NCBI GenBank assembly: GCA_965649825.1
Contig: OZ287703.1
Span: 372,001 to 436,000 of the forward strand
Source: Penicillus capitatus
Taxonomy: Eukaryota > Plantae > Chlorophyta
Length of the DNA stretch: 64,000 nucleotides
Direction: 5' to 3'
In this document: piece after piece, positions 4,424-50,699 of the stretch
Layout: every line of letters begins with the position of its first letter
Position numbering within the stretch: the first letter of the stretch is position 1
Position numbers and translations under genes: made by a program
Notes under the pieces: model-generated
Seen by the model: only the letters and a program-made list of their open reading frames with translations
What the model was told of the DNA's origin: nothing
Database searches by the model: none

Positions 4424-4621
4424 ATGATGACGGATGCGACAGAGAATCCAAAAGCGCCTCTGCCGTTGATGAAATTCCCCATGAAGTTGAGAGGGAAGAA
4501 AAACGATACCATCATTGGTACAGGAGAGCCACGCAGCTTCGTCCAAGAATCATTGTCGACGGCTCTAGAACTGGCCGATTGTCGCATTCGCATGCAAAAC
4601 GCAAAACAAAACAGATCTTAA
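4424..4621 (+). pseudogene. Truncated TRM1 5' stub fused to unrelated sequence (65-codon chimeric ORF)
   Basis: Begins MMTDATEN, identical to the TRM1 start at 11390, then diverges completely. Confidence 0.5.
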
Positions 4622-40767: not shown

Positions 40768-42541
40768 TCACTCTTGATGGTCAGAGGCCACAGAGGGCAG
40801 AACAGAGTTGCCATCTTGTCGGCGCTTTTCATAGAATACCATATAGGCCTGAGAAGAGGCGACCTCCGATGTCTGGACACGTTTGACCAAAGAATCGTTC
40901 AGTTTGAACCACATTCCATTCTTCTGCAAATATGTCCAGTAATGCCCTCCATTCAGCGTGCCTCGATGCGAAATGACGGCGATCAAATGATACATCCATG
41001 ACCTACATACAGCGTATCCCTCTCTCGCCATAAAAGAGTGAGAAAAGTGTGACTTTGCGGAGGTCATTGAACAGATTGATGAAATATCTAAAATCGCTGG
41101 GCATTCCACATGCATCTCCAGCTTCTTTGATCGCATGGTGCGAGAATTGAAGTCAAATCGCTTTAGGTGTACAACGAGAAGTTTCGGACATTGCGTCATG
41201 GTCGTCTTCTTGACTGCCTGATCACGAACACCGTCACATCAACAGTGTATTCCCATAGCAATGCGATATCACACACGTTTCGAAAACAATCACAGTGATC
41301 ACACATCCAGAAAGGCACGATCTCCACTCTGTGAAAATCTCGTAGACAATCCTGAAGTGTTTTCTTCTGCTGTGTGGCGGCGGGCACTTGGGAGAGAGGC
41401 GGCGGATCTGTATGATTATTCCATTCCTGAGCAGAATACGCCTCATAGTTGTTGGCCGACAGCGTTTTCAGTTTCTAACAGACACGAACACACACGTCTC
41501 GCTGTTCTCCCAAATACATCTTCAACAAACCAAATGACACCTTATTGCGCAGACATCCTTTCTTCCGTTTCGGATGACTACAGGCGGCGCAGCGACCGCA
41601 TCTTCGCAAAGCCTTCTTCCTTATTCTCTGTCCTGCTAAGGAACGCCGTTCAGGCTGTTTCAACCATTCCTCCTGCTGTTGATTTCTAGAGGGCGAAGTG
41701 GTGGGTGAGGAGGCTGCCGCCTCAAGGGTCGATGTGGCATTGGATGAGCGATCGCGACCATTCAAGACACCGCCTTTCGCATTTGGTTTCTTAGGCGTCA
41801 CCGAGTGGAGTGATAGAGAATGATCGACGAACGTCTCGTCAATGCGCGATGTATAACCACACACTTCGCAGCTTAATGTCGTTTGGAGCACGCCCTTGAA
41901 TAGACTCTCTGTCAATCTCTGCCCTCCTACACCATCGCCGTAAGGCTGGATGGATGGAGGTCGTTGGCTCAGTGATGTGTGACCTGGATGGTGTGTCAAG
42001 GCTTCGATCGCGAGCAGCCAGAAATCGTGGGCATCATGCATACCACCGTCTGCGAATTCGGGCTCGATGGACCACAACGCCCGCAGCAGTGTGGGGACGG
42101 CGAGTGGTGTGTGGTTCGTTGAGGAAAATTCCTGGACGACACGTCCCTGCGCCATCTTTCATTAGCCATCCATCTCTCGATGAAGAAACGCGATACGAGT
42201 TGACAAACGAGGCACGTTTCGGCGGTGCACCGACGCGTCGTCGTCGACAAATCGTCGTTGTCGTCATCGTCGAGATAAAACTTCGCAATGGCGGGGATAT
42301 GGGCGAGGACCTGTATCAACCGTCCGTCGCTGTCCGATAGCGCACCAACCGTAGAGACATCACGCACTTGAAGGACGCAGTTGATGTAGCAGGTGCAGCC
42401 AAGGTTCACGAGACCACGCAGCGCAACTTGGCCCACAGTATCCTGTACATTCCACGGAGGCGATAAACAAAGCGCCGTTTTCGATGCTGTGAAACGCACC
42501 TCGATCGAGAGCATCGATTTTCTGGCGCCACGCGTTTCCAT
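40768..42541 (-). CDS. Ubiquitin-specific protease (C19, USP22/UBP22-like catalytic domain) with an inserted CXXC-like motif
   Basis: Cys box GLVNLGCTCYINCVLQ; HDAHDF; finger CEVC...CDHC; HLKRF; His box HRGTLNGGHY; NDSLV; AYMVFY. Confidence 0.88.
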
Positions 42542-42607
42542 GACATGCAGTTCGAGCGCGATGCGGTGGGGCAATGTAATAAGTCTTTGATGGGACAGAC
42601 GTGACCG

Positions 42608-43561
42608 TCAGCCGTTGAAGTAGACCGTTACAGCTTTGACGATGGCGTTGATGATCATAACTTCCACCTCCAAACGCGATGCATGACACAAGGGCGCAGT
42701 ACATTCGATGAGCGCACAAAGATCGACATTCCGTGGCAGATACAACATCACAAGCGTCTTCCGCGATTCCCACGAACCGACCAATGCCAACGCCTTCTCC
42801 ACGTACTGTCCCAAATCTGACCCACGACCGAGAGGCGTGTAATCTTGGTGTTGGTAATCGGGTCCACCCCAAGGAGGCGAGAGGAACACGACATCGGGTC
42901 GCATACCGCGTCCCACGTCGAAAACGTCGCCCTGGAGGAACTCGATCTTGTCCTCGACGCCGTAAACATGGGCGTTGTTGCGGGCCATGTGTAGACGAGC
43001 GCAGTCGAGATCGACGGCGATGACGCGATGTCCATGTGCGGCGAATTGAATCGCATTGCCGCCGACGCCACAGCAGGCGTCAAGAACGAGTAGTGGCGTC
43101 TGGAGGCGGCTGCATTTTTGGGCGTGGTGTTGGGCGAGACATTCAGGGGTCACGGAATACCATCCCTCTTGATCCAGTCGGATCCCTTCGTCGAATCTGG
43201 AGAAGAGACTGTAGCGCTGAAGCCAGTAACGCACGAAACGACGACCCAGTGACTTGCGCAAGGCTGCGGCTTCTTTGTTGCGTGGAGGATGCGGGGAATG
43301 ACATCTGCGTCGTTTCTTAGGCGGATTCTGTCGTTTGGAAGTGCCGAAAGAGAGAGGCAGTCCGAGTTCAGCCCGTTCCTTTAACGACGGATCTCTCGAC
43401 GCCTCTTTGTCGCTGATGCCGCTGTCCTCTTCAGACGAGAGCGCGACGACGCCGACGTCCTCAAATTCGGCGACGGTGAATTGCGAGGCGTTAAGGGAGA
43501 GGCCCTCGGGCAGTGGTCGTCCTTCCAGATAATCGATAGCACTATAACGACACGATGCCAT
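42608..43561 (-). CDS. TGS1: Trimethylguanosine synthase, intronless
   Basis: Contains YWLQRYSLFSRFDEGIRLDQEGWYSVTPE, DACCGVGGNAIQFA and FLSPPWGGPDY. Confidence 0.92.
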   Translation of the reverse strand: MASCRYSAIDYLEGRPLPEGLSLNASQFTVAEFEDVGVVALSSEEDSGISDKEASRDPSLKERAELGLPLSFGTSKRQNPPKKRRRCHSPHPPRNKEAAALRKSLGRRFVRYWLQRYSLFSRFDEGIRLDQEGWYSVTPECLAQHHAQKCSRLQTPLLVLDACCGVGGNAIQFAAHGHRVIAVDLDCARLHMARNNAHVYGVEDKIEFLQGDVFDVGRGMRPDVVFLSPPWGGPDYQHQDYTPLGRGSDLGQYVEKALALVGSWESRKTLVMLYLPRNVDLCALIECTAPLCHASRLEVEVMIINAIVKAVTVYFNG

Positions 43562-43573
43562 TCTGCACGTGAA

Positions 43574-44801
43574 ATGATCCACACGACGCGTCCCTTGACG
43601 CAGCTGCGGCCTGTCATTCGACGGCCAGCGATCCGACATTCCCGCTGTGTTGGCATGACGATGCAACGTGGTAGGGAGAGACCAGAGAGGACGATGGAGT
43701 GATCCGTGTGTGGTGCTAGCGAAGCGAAACGATGAGCTATGGGCATTGGACTTTGATGGAGTCGTTTGCGATTCCTGTGGGGAAAGCAGTCTCTCGGCAT
43801 GGAAAGTCCGGCATTGGTCAAACGTTGGCTGGTATTCGTGAGATCGTGCGTGGAATAGGCGGCTGCTCGCGTCTGGCCAGAGCTGATGGCAACGGATCAG
43901 GCATCGAAACAAAAAACCGCAATTCTGGACAAGATGCGTATCGTTCGGCCCGTTGTCGAAACGGGGTCAGCCATAGGCCTTCACTCTCTGAGCGTTGGCC
44001 GCTTTTGGTGATAGATACGAGAACATCGTGCAGATTCGTTGTCTCCTCGAAGGAATGGACACGGAGGAGATGCTTCTCCACTGGAATACGATCTTGCCAG
44101 AGCGTATGGAGGAATGGAATCTGCGTCGATCTGAGGTGACGTTTCCTCAAGGCAGCCAGCCATCAACCATCCCCCACAACTATCGCTGTGCATAGCTCGT
44201 TGAGTTATTCGGCGCGACACGCGATGCCTGGATGGCAAGGGATCTGGCATCATGGCTTGCACCCAATGAAATTTTCGACGGCCTTCCTGAGGCATTGCCT
44301 CATCTGATCGAACGTTCCACTGTCTATATCGTCACGACGAAACAGGTGTGGGATTGAACTTGAGGAGACGTGGCCGAGTCCCATGGTTTCTAGGCGCGCT
44401 TTACTCATGTTTTGTTGAGAGACAAGGCCAAGATCGATTTCCCGCTGGATCGCATTCTGTCGACAACGGTCTCGGGGCAACCCAAAACTGAAATTCTCCA
44501 GCAGCTTCAGCGAGAGCACGGCGATCGGCGTTACTTCTTTATCGAAGATAAACTCTCGACCCTTGATAAGGCAAGCAGCCATCGAACGCACAAACATCTG
44601 TGAAGTGACGTCTATCGGAATTAGGTTTGCGCAGATGACAGCCTGCATGACTGGACGCTGTATTTGGCCGATTGGGGATACAACACCGCAAAGGAACGCG
44701 CTCGCGCATCCGAGAATGCAAGGATCGAAATCATCAACCTCAGTCGTTTTGTTTGGCTACTCGAAAACGGTGTCGTGCCGAAGACAACGCGGGGCGTGTG
44801 A
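43574..44801 (+). CDS. HAD-like hydrolase (conserved plant/algal/cyanobacterial type), probably plastid-targeted
   Basis: Contains ALDFDGVVCDS, RPVVETG|YE, YIVTTKQ|ARF, GQPK, FIEDKLSTL and LADWGYNT. Seven exons; GC-AG intron at 44571-44624. Confidence 0.85.
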
Positions 44802-44852
44802 GATGAGCGCCAACGTGACAAGTGACGTGACCGTTCGCCAGACATTGCGTCT

Positions 44853-46816
44853 ATGGATTTCCACATACCGTGTCTCTTCCACTGCGCCCTGTGCGGCGAA
44901 GATAAGCCGATTGATGACGCTGAGCCGCTGGACAACTGTACCTGTCTGTTCTGCCATCGTTGTTTAACGGTTTATCTCGCACAGCAACTCGAGAACAAGC
45001 GGCATCTCCTGGAGAGACAGTCGTTCGAAGAGCATTTCGAAGTGCAACGCACAGGGACGTATGTCGACGACGAAGGACTGATACGCCCAGCGACGGTGGA
45101 GGACGTCGCATTCGGAAACGACTGGGAGGACTCGAGCGTTACGCTCACGCTTGAGGATGGCGGGGAAGTGACGTCTACTTACTGGCGCGTCGCTTTTGCG
45201 GATGAGAAATCGGCGACGATGTCTATGGGAGGGTATGCATGGGTCGAATGTCCAGGAGAAGGTTGCTATGGCATCATCAGCAAGAGCGAGTCGCGGACCC
45301 TCTGCCCCGATGCCTTCGATCAGTTTCTGGAAGCGGAGACGATAGCACATGCCCGTCTGAGTGGCTGCATTCGGTGTCCTTATGAGGATTGCCGTTGCCT
45401 GATCGAACGCCTTGATACAGGAGAGAGATCGGGAAAGCTGATAGGGTCCGATCATGGAGAGCACTACCGTTTTCGATGTGCTGGCTGTCAGCGTGATTTC
45501 TGCGGCGTGTGTTTTGCAAAGCCCTATCATACGGGATTCAATTGTCTGCAGTTTCGAATGCCCAACTGCCGTTACTGCGAACAGAGACTCGATCCTGTCG
45601 AGAGAAGAAGCCTCGAGCGCAAAAAACCGCGGGATCTGACAATTCAACAACTCAAGAGACTCGCCAGACATGCAGCAGTGGACAGCTCCTGGTGTCTGGA
45701 GAAGAGTGATTTTGTTTTCGTGGCCGAGCGCATACGATCTGTCTGCAACAAACCAGAATGTCGGGGATTCTTAAAGAAATCCTGCACCAAGAAGCTGCCT
45801 TGCGGACACGGATGCTGCGGCGTTGGACCGGATGCCAATGATCCCAATATCGTACACAGATGTCTTCCATGCTTTGAACCGGATTGCCCACATTCCAGTT
45901 CCGAGTTCGATGGCTGTCAGATCTGTTGGGAATCGTTTGCTACGCGTCCCTGCATCGAGCTCTCCTGCAAACATCTCATCCATCTAGGTAGGATGGTACT
46001 GTGCAGGAGTGAACGGATAGCTGAAGGAAGTGCATTGCAGAGTGTGCACGGGAGCGGTTGATGCAAGGATATCCTGGTCCTTCCATTAGTTTCAACCATC
46101 TCTACTGTTCCATGTGCGGAACAGCTGGAAGAGAGAACCCTGCCGTGCAGATTGCAACATCTGATTGTTCGTTTGATCATCCACTTCTGAAGAAAGAGAT
46201 CCAACCCGTGCTCCAATTGAGGGAACGTGTCGTAAAGCTTGCAATGGCACGTCTCAAAGCCTCTGACGATATTAAAGATGAAGTCTGGTCCTTTAGAGAT
46301 CAATCGAATACATGTGGACCAGTGCTGCTGGTGTTTAGGCATTGCAGCCAGGAGGCGAATTTCATGGACGCCCTGCAGACTACGCCTTGAAGAAGTACAT
46401 GTTCTACCTGTGCTCCAAATGCAAGAAGCCCTATTTTGGTGGACTACGTGACTGTCAAGCCGCCGCAAACAACGCCGCAGAGTTCAATCCAGAAGACCTC
46501 ATCTGTGGAAGCTGCTGTGCCGTTGCTGCCGGACAGAACTGTCCACGTCATGGAACGACCTTCATTGAATGGAAATGCCGGTAGTACATTGAAACCATAT
46601 GTGTCTGCGAGCCTTGTCTCCTGGTTCAGGTATTGCTGCGACGTGGCCTGTTGGTTTTGTTGGGGGACAACGCATTTCTGTGATCCCTGTCACCGTCATC
46701 TGACACAGCAGATCAAGCCTTGTCGAGGAGAGCAGTGTCCCCTCAAAGTGGAACACCCCAAGCCAGGAACGGAGTTCTGTCTGGGTTGTGCTCTCTGTCG
46801 TCATCGTTACGAATAG
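44853..46816 (+). CDS. E3 ubiquitin ligase: RING1-IBR fused to a MYCBP2/Highwire-type RING plus tandem-cysteine (RCR) module
   Basis: RING-like CALC..CTCLFCHRC..CPGEGC; IBR CPYEDC..CAGCQRDFCGVCFAKPYHTGFNC; MYCBP2-like VCNKPEC..CTKKLPCGHGCCGV..CLPC; RING CQIC..CKHLIHL..C..CSMC; TC module YFGGLRDC..ICGSC..CPRHG..EWKCRYCC..WFCWGTTHFCDPCH..CPL..HP..EFCLGCALC. Confidence 0.85.
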
Positions 46817-46944
46817 ACAGGAGACACCTTCGACACCGTCTTTGCCGGAGATGTTTGTGAGCTACAAGAACTGAGTGTGGTTTCGTGGATCTATGTGAGT
46901 CGTGGGTCAGTCGTCATGGGAAGTCATTCGGTACATGTTAAACG

Positions 46945-48291
46945 ATGTTGATGCTACATATGCGTATGTCGTCTTCGAATACAACGGCGCTCGTTCCGTG
47001 CAGCGGCCGTCCGTTACGAAGGATCTGTACTCAGCGAGGTGATCTCGGCCGAAAGCGTATCTGTAGAAAAGAGATGGTGACGCCCGGAACGCGTTGGTCT
47101 GTTGCGGCGGTACCTCTCACCTCCTCGGCACGCGTTTCAAGTAAACAGAACTTCGGAGTGCATGTGCGTGTACCTCTCCTGTGGGAGTGACTAGTCTCTG
47201 ATCGGATGAGAAAACTCAAAACGATGCAAAAGTATGTGTGTGCTGTTCATGACATGCATTGAGGGATTTGAGAATCTCCTGAAGGACGGCGTTTCTTCCG
47301 TTTATCTGCGCCGGAGATCCAGATTTGAAAACAACGGCAGAGGCTCTGCGTTACTTGAGTGAAATATCAACTGTCATTGAACTGGGCGTACCCTATACGG
47401 TGATCAATCACACACGATGCTGCTGCACTTTCCTCGATCTCCCCTTATTTATGTAAAGGATCCTTTGGCAGATGGTCCTGTCATTCACGGTGCCGCTACA
47501 CGTGCCCTAGAACAAGGTCGCATTCATCTCCAAACGTCTTTTCACGGTCACAGAAGAATGATGTGACAGGCACGACACTGAACAAAGTACTGGACATGCT
47601 CTCGACGGTTACACCTGAACTCACGTGTCCAGTACTTCTGTTTACATACTTCAATCCCATCCGTGCACGGGGTCTCGATGTCTTCTGTCGTCGGATCCGA
47701 GAAGCAGGCGTTTCGGGTAGATCTATGGATTTCGCTGTTTTGTGCGAAGGGTCATGCATGATAAGGTTTGCTCGTTCCGGATCTGCCACTGGAGTTGACG
47801 CATGAGATACGGGAGGCCTGTGGGAAGGAAGGCATCGAATTGACGTTGCTTGTGACGCCGACCACACCCAAGGAACGCATGAGAGAGATCGCCAAGTACA
47901 CTCAAGGATTTGTGTATCTCATCAGCGTCACGGGTGTCACCGGAATACGTGCAGAGCTTAATCAGAAACTGCAAACTCTGATCGAGATGCTTCATGACAC
48001 AACAGAGAAATCGGTGACCACTGCCGTCGATGGATACACCGTCCGTGCAGATCTGTCGGTGCCGATGGCTGGCTGTAGGTTTCTGTGGGTTTTGGTGTTT
48101 CGACGGCCGAGCATGCAAAACAGCTACGAGAATGGGGCGCCGATGGCGTCGTGGTTGGCTCTGCTTTAGTCAAGGCACTTCACGTGCGTCCCTCTCCTAC
48201 CCCCTTCTCAATTTTCTCACCATTTCTGCAGGAAGGCGGCATTCCCAAAATGAAAACGGTGGCTCAGTCGATTCAGAGCGGAATTGCTTAA
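46945..48291 (+). CDS. TSA1: Tryptophan synthase alpha chain, plastid-targeted
   Basis: Contains [19 protein letters not shown]|[43 protein letters not shown] and [12 protein letters not shown]. Confidence 0.93.
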
Positions 48292-49994: not shown

Positions 49995-50699
49995 TTAAGA
50001 GATGGGTGCTCGAGGTAGTGTTCTGCAAGTGATGGCGCCGCTGGCGACCATCATCGGCTGACCGTCGTACGTGGCAACCCCGTTATCGTCTGTTTGCATC
50101 AACGGCTGGAGTTTCTCCCAGATCTTCTGTTTCTTGATACGGTTTTCGGATTCCGGCGGCGCTTCGCTCGGACCGATACGGATCCGCTCGCCGATGACGG
50201 CATCGGGTGGAGGCAGAAGTGGAGCGACTTTGCCGTTCTCTTTGTCCGATGCACAGAGCAGCATCCCGTGGGATTTGATACCACGGAAATTACGTGCTTT
50301 GAGATTGCAGAGGACGACGACAGAGCTCAAACTTAGGTCTTCGGCAGTGAGGTAGGGTACCAGTCCACTGCAAATCGTCCTTGGTTCCTCCTCTCCGACG
50401 TCGATCTGCTCGACAAAGAGGGCATCGGCGTCCGGATGCCGCTCGCATGACAGAATTTTGCCCACACGAATATCTAAAGCGGAAGGTAACGGTGTCTCTT
50501 CTTTGGACGCTACGGTTGCCTCTCCTTGCTCTGGCGTGTCTTGGATCGCGAAGCATCGCCGGCCTGATCTCTGATAGAATGCCGATATAGGGTTCTCGCG
50601 TAAGAGAGACAGCCGTCGACGCGTGCTCGGAAATGGATGGCTGGGCAAGGGGAGTCTTCTGGTGTTGACGAAAAGAACGCGTCGGACCACACTCGCCAT
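49995..50699 (-). CDS. Stand-alone EMAP-II/Arc1p-C-like tRNA-binding OB-fold protein with organellar transit peptide, intronless
   Basis: Contains LDIRVGKILSCERHPDADALFVEQIDVGEEEPRTICSGL, NLKARNFRGIKSHGMLLCAS and PPPDAVIGERI. Confidence 0.88.
   Translation of the reverse strand: MASVVRRVLFVNTRRLPLPSHPFPSTRRRLSLLRENPISAFYQRSGRRCFAIQDTPEQGEATVASKEETPLPSALDIRVGKILSCERHPDADALFVEQIDVGEEEPRTICSGLVPYLTAEDLSLSSVVVLCNLKARNFRGIKSHGMLLCASDKENGKVAPLLPPPDAVIGERIRIGPSEAPPESENRIKKQKIWEKLQPLMQTDDNGVATYDGQPMMVASGAITCRTLPRAPIS

Follow-up and report, generated by a model that had tools for sequence, protein, structure and literature searches.

A putative RING-Cys-relay ubiquitin ligase with an RBR-type RING1-IBR N-terminus in the green alga Penicillus capitatus

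Within a 64,000-nucleotide stretch of the Penicillus capitatus genome (contig OZ287703.1, positions 372,001 to 436,000, assembly GCA_965649825.1; hereafter the window), one nuclear gene at 44853-46816 appears to encode a compact ubiquitin ligase, rich in zinc sites and belonging to the RING-Cys-relay (RCR) class. Reviews name the animal protein MYCBP2 as the first example of this class (including PMC9527308). The best explanation of the locus, to which we assign a probability of roughly 0.6, would be an RCR-class ligase with a MYCBP2-like relay, an accessory RING1-IBR unit of the kind found in RING-between-RING (RBR) ligases, and Tudor-like and SAP-like modules that serve in targeting. The Penicillus protein is a chlorophyte-specific version within a larger family, with these last two as extra modules. 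All parts of the gene described below lie on the plus strand, and nucleotide coordinates are positions in the window.

The class assignment starts from the C-terminus. In a phmmer search against all PDB chains, residues 348-596 align with the MYCBP2 RCR crystal structures 6t7f and 5o6c at E=6e-53, a match far above chance, and Foldseek leads from the predicted model to the same two structures (E ~2e-20, TM-score 0.63-0.67). The alignment establishes that the C-terminal 250 residues are homologous to the catalytic module of MYCBP2 over its full extent, with RING, linker helix and tandem-cysteine (TC) domain. The RCR RING (residues 353-406, 45909..46123, across intron 1) aligns with the MYCBP2 RING and is recognized by Pfam zf-RING_5 over residues 355-405. 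It is the best-conserved segment across the family with a score of 0.59, the TC domain scoring 0.56. The linker helix (residues 425-455, 46178..46270) aligns with its MYCBP2 counterpart and is predicted as a helix at 426-452 by AlphaFold2, and the TC domain (residues 463-598, 46357..46813, across intron 3) is identified both by alignment to MYCBP2 and by the Foldseek matches to 5o6c and 6t7f.

Both relay cysteines can be placed in this alignment. GGLRDC lies under GGEARC, which puts C495 (codon 46453-46455), on a loop of residues 488-510, at the position of the upstream relay cysteine C4520, and WFCWGTTHF lies under FFCFGTTHF, which puts C547 (46658-46660) at the position of the downstream catalytic cysteine C4572. 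H558 (46691-46693) corresponds to the catalytic H4583 and D509 (46495-46497) occupies the position of the acidic E4534; both are predicted partners of C547. In a MAFFT alignment of 165 family TC domains, the source of all residue counts given here, the positions of C495, C547 and H558 are invariant (165/165), and the acidic position holds E or D in 129 of the 165 (E in 94 and D, as here, in 35). A sequence-only reading of the window, made without database searches, had proposed a complete MYCBP2-type module with relay cysteines at exactly these two codons, belonging to a non-metazoan RCR-class ligase. All of this is borne out, and the nearest named relatives are green algae. We infer relay activity of the algal protein on this sequence basis.

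The last chemical step calls for more caution. The downstream site of MYCBP2 has been described as a Cys-His-Glu triad next to a hydrophobic pocket that accommodates the methyl group of threonine, in which F4573 and F4586 confer the preference for threonine (PMC9527308). These pocket residues, a criterion of the RCR class, are replaced here by W548 and L561. Threonine (or serine) selectivity can therefore not be assumed, though the relay and the catalytic core are kept, and the difference concerns selectivity, not relay. A tentative possibility is thus that the relay is intact and works on lysine, serine, a non-protein hydroxyl or another nucleophile, with no selectivity for threonine. The two replacements would fit such an altered chemistry, as would the Glu to Asp change at the acidic position and the variability of the F4586 position, which is unconserved in the family (Q 45, A 24, W 19, P 17 and F only 10, of 165). 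Against it speak the strong conservation of the Cys-His pair and of the FC[WF]G[TS]TH motif around it, and the aromatic residue found at position 4573 in 155 of the 165 domains. Beside the catalytic cysteine, a metagenomic relative (L001, a contig of 944,726 bp, ENA ERZ25074695) with 88% nucleotide identity has WFCHGNTHYC in place of the WFCWGTTHFC of Penicillus, so residues flanking the active site drift even among close species.

The N-terminus resembles another class of ligases. Three alignments were used in its analysis and in what follows, one of nine sequences (A1), one of 18 diverse N-termini (A2) and one of 45 sequences (A3). The N-terminal part of RING1 (residues 8-40, 44874..44972) contributes the ligands C11, C14, C29, C31, C34 and C37 according to A2, with Cys at position 31 where most relatives have His, and the last ligand pair (C133-P and C138, 45240..45272) is invariant in A2 and kept in at least 90% of A3. 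The IBR domain (residues 172-233, 45366..45551) has all eight ligands (C175, C180, C209, C212, C217, C220, H226 and C231), and most of these columns are invariant in the 45 sequences. Pfam IBR (PF01485) scores 23 bits on residues 158-231 of this single sequence, just below its 24.3-bit cut-off, and detects the domain in 16 of 18 family members, the best of them at E=4e-10. When the profile of family N-termini built from A2 is compared with the PDB, it finds HOIL-1 (7e-11), ARIH2 (2e-10), HOIP (5e-8), RNF216 (1e-6), CUL9 (3e-5) and RNF144A (4e-5); the matches extend over RING1 to the start of the IBR, and ordinary RINGs score lower. A fold search with Foldseek also finds HOIL-1 and parkin. There is one IBR-type stretch only, and nothing after it matches an RBR protein in PDB or Pfam, so that no Rcat (RING2) domain was detected. 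These comparisons establish the N-terminus as an RBR-type RING1-IBR without Rcat, in agreement with the sequence-only reading. Lacking an Rcat with its catalytic cysteine, the protein is not an RBR ligase.

The two halves are joined by a zinc module that the sequence-only reading had overlooked and that is common with MYCBP2. Its first ligand pair, C239-R-Y-C242 (45561..45590), has C239 invariant and C242 kept in at least 90% of A3, and probably pairs with C298/C303 of the zinc core (residues 297-347, 45741..45893), which follows the pattern VCx4C..SCx5CGHxCxG..CxxCx4C. Nearly every member of the family has this pre-RING module, vertebrate MYCBP2 (P0144, residues 4364-4405), nematode RPM-1 and a stramenopile giant among them; it immediately precedes the RCR RING and is not covered by the RCR construct that was crystallised. 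The element CRFC...VCx4C recurs in MYCBP2, and the variable loop within it has a modal length of 14 residues, as in MYCBP2 and many others, and reaches 50-60 in the green lineage. For the zinc core we found no Pfam family and no relative in the PDB or by Foldseek. The first zinc site has the spacing CxxC-x14-Cx4C, which is also that of RBR Rcat domains and which led us to consider the module as a decayed Rcat. Whether or not they included the CRFC element, profiles retrieved no RBR from the PDB, and their only matches, to a Cas12f zinc ribbon at E=1.3, are at chance level; Pfam and Foldseek gave nothing, and the idea was dropped.

In the green lineage the variable loop of this module carries a helix, extended loop and helix with a SAP-like character (residues 259-296, 45627..45740; predicted helices 264-273 and 284-295). 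The sequence-only reading had described a SAP-like insert that interrupts the MYCBP2-type module. The insert is indeed there, with a weak signal, but the crystallised RCR module runs uninterrupted and the element belongs to the zinc module upstream of it. Pfam reports sub-threshold matches to SAP, SAP_RNF34_RFFL and ARMET_C; a profile of the element reaches the SAP region of RFFL/CARP2 (1y02) at E=1.5e-3 and the C-terminal domain of CDNF/MANF at E=0.012-0.5; and Foldseek ranks MANF and CDNF on top for the sub-model, with a TM-score of 0.75 and a root-mean-square deviation (rmsd) of 1.1 Å over 35 residues, but with E >1. These three independent lines agree and weakly back the SAP-like nature of the element.

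The second extra module, also absent from the sequence-only reading, sits inside RING1. The second RING1 loop, which separates zinc ligands 6 and 7, holds an insertion of ~85 residues in chlorophyte members alone, ~55 of which form a predicted Tudor/SH3-like beta-barrel (residues ~62-118, 45036..45206; AlphaFold2 strands 67-71, 77-86, 95-100 and 105-108). Its columns have an occupancy of 0.18 in the 45-sequence alignment. Foldseek superposes the barrel on the Tudor domains of PHF1, PHF19, PHF20, Pcl and LBR with probability 1.0, TM-scores of 0.65-0.82 and an rmsd of ~2 Å over 53-60 alignment columns, at E values of only 0.04-0.1. Pfam found no match for nine Tudor-like inserts, so the assignment would hold at the level of the fold only. 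In the trebouxiophyte [Myrmecia] bisecta, a relative of 1312 residues (P0017) has two extra Tudor-like copies upstream and, after a truncated TC domain, what by eye resemble two methyl-CpG-binding-type repeats and a PHD finger. Its domain content hints at a chromatin link; it may also be a fused gene model.

How widespread this architecture is became clear when 1.84 billion cluster representatives were searched exhaustively with a HMMER profile. At E≤1e-3 there were 3,032 matching representatives, of which 694 reached E≤1e-30, and every one of the best 150 had E≤1e-83. A word-indexed homologue search queried with the single protein, A1 or A3 gave the same 13 proteins each time, MYCBP2 not among them, and only the exhaustive profile search revealed the true size of the family. 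We dissected 178 proteins with sub-profile hidden Markov models, namely the best matches of the exhaustive search, their cluster members and the 13 word-indexed matches. IBR and TC domains occur together in ~144 of the 178, nearly all of which also have the pre-RING module, and the strict RING1 motif is present in 91 of these. Since the ranking favours full-length matches this proportion is biased, yet the fusion is plainly frequent and is the commonest architecture among the dissected proteins. The sequence-only reading had seen a local graft, and this notion has to be abandoned. The dissected proteins come from at least six eukaryotic supergroups, and the fusion occurs in green algae (Bryopsis, Chlamydomonas, Sanguina, Myrmecia, Cymbomonas), streptophyte algae (the charophytes Chara and Chlorokybus), a fern known from transcriptome only (Pteridium), Amoebozoa (Balamuthia, Luapelamoeba, Cavenderia), Metamonada (Anaeramoeba), a kinetoplastid (Neobodo), a stramenopile (Platysulcus) and Rhizaria (Nonionella, Norrisiella).

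The family also includes giants of 2,400-4,700 residues in which pre-RING module, RING, linker and TC domain are present and the IBR is absent. In the transcriptome of the stramenopile Cantina marsupialis, a protein of ~3,950 residues (P0130/P0177) has these four parts at its C-terminus, so that animals are not alone in having giants with a terminal RCR module. Some members have automatic database names such as 'RCR-type E3 ubiquitin transferase', 'E3 ubiquitin-protein ligase highwire/mycbp2' or 'IBR domain-containing protein'. A literature search found no description of an IBR-RCR family or of a non-animal RCR enzyme, with the proviso that such proteins may appear in the supplementary bioinformatics to Pao 2018 and Mabbitt 2020, and a plant RBR gene survey of 2010 lists only four RBR subfamilies, this family not among them. 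Of the thought entertained in the sequence-only reading, that the architecture might turn out to be common and already characterised, the first half has come true, while for the second the literature search found nothing. The family is large and ancient, seemingly known to databases only by automatic names and apparently unstudied.

The full-length AlphaFold2 model, computed with the 45-sequence alignment, has a mean predicted local distance difference test (pLDDT) value of 86.9 and a predicted TM-score (pTM) of 0.77, which suggests a defined domain arrangement. Confidence is low in the linker after the barrel, in a loop of the IBR, in the loop of residues 407-424 and in the C495 loop. The last of these, at pLDDT 67-74, is the lowest within the TC domain. 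The mediator loop of MYCBP2 is reportedly mobile, and the low pLDDT of the C495 loop would fit such mobility. Residues 407-424 (46124-46177) form a loop of ~15 residues directly after the RCR RING that only green-lineage members have (occupancy 0.39, pLDDT ~66); it shows a conserved Gln and Asp-His in the nine-sequence alignment.

Taken as an RCR-class ligase, the protein could work as follows. An E2~ubiquitin conjugate would dock on the RCR RING as in MYCBP2, ubiquitin would pass to C495 on its mobile loop as a thioester and be relayed from there to C547, and H558 and D509 would assist its discharge onto a substrate nucleophile, most likely a hydroxyl. The RING1-IBR would most likely be an accessory platform, inherited family-wide, that binds ubiquitin or E2~ubiquitin or has a regulatory role; ubiquitin probably does not enter chiefly through it. 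Two modules specific to green algae, the Tudor-like barrel and the pair of SAP-like helices, may stand in for the substrate-recruiting scaffold of animal MYCBP2, probably by targeting the enzyme to a partner protein and possibly to chromatin.

A rather doubtful variant of this scheme, put forward in the sequence-only reading, makes the RING1-IBR a second productive dock for E2~ubiquitin that feeds C495, with or instead of the RCR RING. It draws on the closest solved relatives of the N-terminus, which are E2~ubiquitin-binding RBR RING1-IBR units (HOIL-1, ARIH2, HOIP, RNF216), on the zinc ligands of RING1 and IBR, which are kept in at least 90% of 45 diverse family sequences, on an intermediate conservation of the IBR (0.51) and on the pTM, which suggests a fixed arrangement of the domains. 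In RBR ligases, moreover, RING1-IBR always serves a downstream catalytic cysteine. Apart from its ligands, however, RING1 has the lowest conservation (0.32-0.35), its surfaces being the least conserved part of the core, and it tolerates the ~85-residue insertion in chlorophytes. The giant PHR proteins carry an RCR module without any RING1-IBR, and the isolated MYCBP2 RCR module is reportedly sufficient in vitro.

An unlikely but wider proposal combines several of these ideas. RING1-IBR-RCR would be the ancestral, pan-eukaryotic form of RCR ligases and a bridge between the RBR and RCR classes, with the RBR-type platform and the second RING both feeding a two-cysteine relay; in green algae the Tudor-like and SAP-like parts would aim the enzyme at chromatin or a partner, giving ester-linked (non-lysine) ubiquitination outside animals. 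Returning to the RCR-class ligase with accessory RING1-IBR and targeting modules, some observations count against it as we have drawn it. W and L stand where MYCBP2 has the threonine-pocket residues F4573 and F4586, so that the last step may follow another chemistry; the Tudor-like assignment comes from the fold of a predicted model that has no Pfam match; and the SAP-like one, weak in itself, stays below family threshold everywhere. A plain RING ligase or a non-catalytic zinc-finger scaffold without relay is very improbable: nothing specific favours it beyond general caution, and the invariance of both cysteines and the histidine in all 165 TC domains across eukaryotes would be hard to explain without catalysis.

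The gene model was derived from a three-frame translation of 44700-46900 together with inspection of splice signals. Four exons (44853-45987, 46041-46282, 46348-46580 and 46630-46816, TAG included) encode 598 residues; in-frame stops precede the start ATG at 44853, and the three predicted introns of 53, 65 and 49 nucleotides each have GT..AG borders. The junctions are consistent with the full-length homologues P0004-P0007, and the metagenomic relative L001 keeps the 598-residue frame and the same junctions, with indels only in introns 2 and 3. The sequence-only reading had given one spliced gene with exactly this span and had considered that RNA might reveal two. A false joining of two adjacent genes, one for the RING1-IBR and one for the RCR part, is practically excluded by the sequence itself, for exon 1 is one unbroken open reading frame that runs from RING1 through the IBR and the pre-RING module halfway into the RCR RING, the orthologue from Bryopsis is a single frame without introns, and the transcriptome-derived homologues of Neobodo, Luapelamoeba, Platysulcus, Norrisiella and Nonionella contain both halves. 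As exon 1 alone reaches from RING1 into the RCR RING, the fusion does not depend on the splicing model.

The ATG of the ligase comes only ~50 bp (44801-44852) after the stop codon of the preceding reading frame, and together with introns of 49-65 nucleotides this points to a very compact nuclear genome. The neighbouring spans are 41475-42574 and 42608-43912 (both minus strand), 47563-48169 (plus) and 49995-50699 (minus). Among the neighbours are USP-type deubiquitinase fragments (PF00443, just below cut-off), a TGS1-like cap guanine-N2 methyltransferase (PF09445, 7.8e-35), a tryptophan synthase alpha (PF00290) and a protein with a tRNA-binding domain (PF01588). These are ordinary housekeeping genes, and nothing suggests that they and the ligase form a functional cluster. 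An upstream neighbour resembles a HAD-type hydrolase by eye, an assignment we rejected after Pfam gave no match. Scans for tRNA genes and Rfam families found none in the whole window.

The interest of the finding lies mainly at the level of the family. MYCBP2 has been studied only as an animal protein of 0.5 MDa, and an RCR enzyme of 600 residues in a single polypeptide would be far easier to express, crystallise and mutate in studies of the relay and of ester-forming ubiquitination. The family-wide link to an RBR-type RING1-IBR bears on the origin of the cysteine-dependent ligase classes, and the wide spread raises the prospect that RCR enzymes may ubiquitinate non-lysine sites in eukaryotes generally and not in animals alone.

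Comparison with known systems sets the protein in context. Its two putative targeting modules have their closest parallels elsewhere. With RFFL/RNF34 (CARP2, 1Y02) and the C-termini of MANF/CDNF it may share the ~35-residue helix, extended loop and helix with the pattern L..L(K/R)..........C.EK.(E/D)(L/F), but all these matches are sub-threshold and the algal element is inserted inside a zinc module. Its predicted barrel superposes on the Tudor domains of PHF1, PHF19, PHF20, Polycomblike and LBR, although it has no sequence-family match to them and lies within a RING finger loop. With the RBR ligases (HOIL-1/RBCK1, ARIH2, HOIP, RNF216, RNF144A, parkin) it has in common a C3[H/C]C4 RING1 whose end reads C-P-x(3-4)-C, then a helix and after it a canonical C6HC IBR; it differs in having no Rcat/RING2 and no RBR catalytic cysteine, a second RING and a TC domain taking the place of the acceptor domain. 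With MYCBP2 it shares the RING, the linker helix, the TC domain, both relay cysteines, the catalytic histidine and the acidic residue, the FC[FW]GTTHF motif and the zinc module just upstream of the RING. In contrast to MYCBP2, the algal protein has 598 instead of ~4,600 residues and no RCC1-like, PHR, Fbxo45-binding or B-box regions (RING and IBR are all that Pfam detects), in place of which stand the RBR-type RING1-IBR, the Tudor-like barrel and the SAP-like element; the phenylalanines of the pocket are exchanged for W548 and L561, and a loop of ~15 residues is added after the RING. The scaffold missing here and the IBR missing from the giants argue that it is not a PHR orthologue. Judged by its sequence, the Penicillus protein is neither an RBR ligase nor a PHR orthologue, and by its defining features it is of the RCR class.

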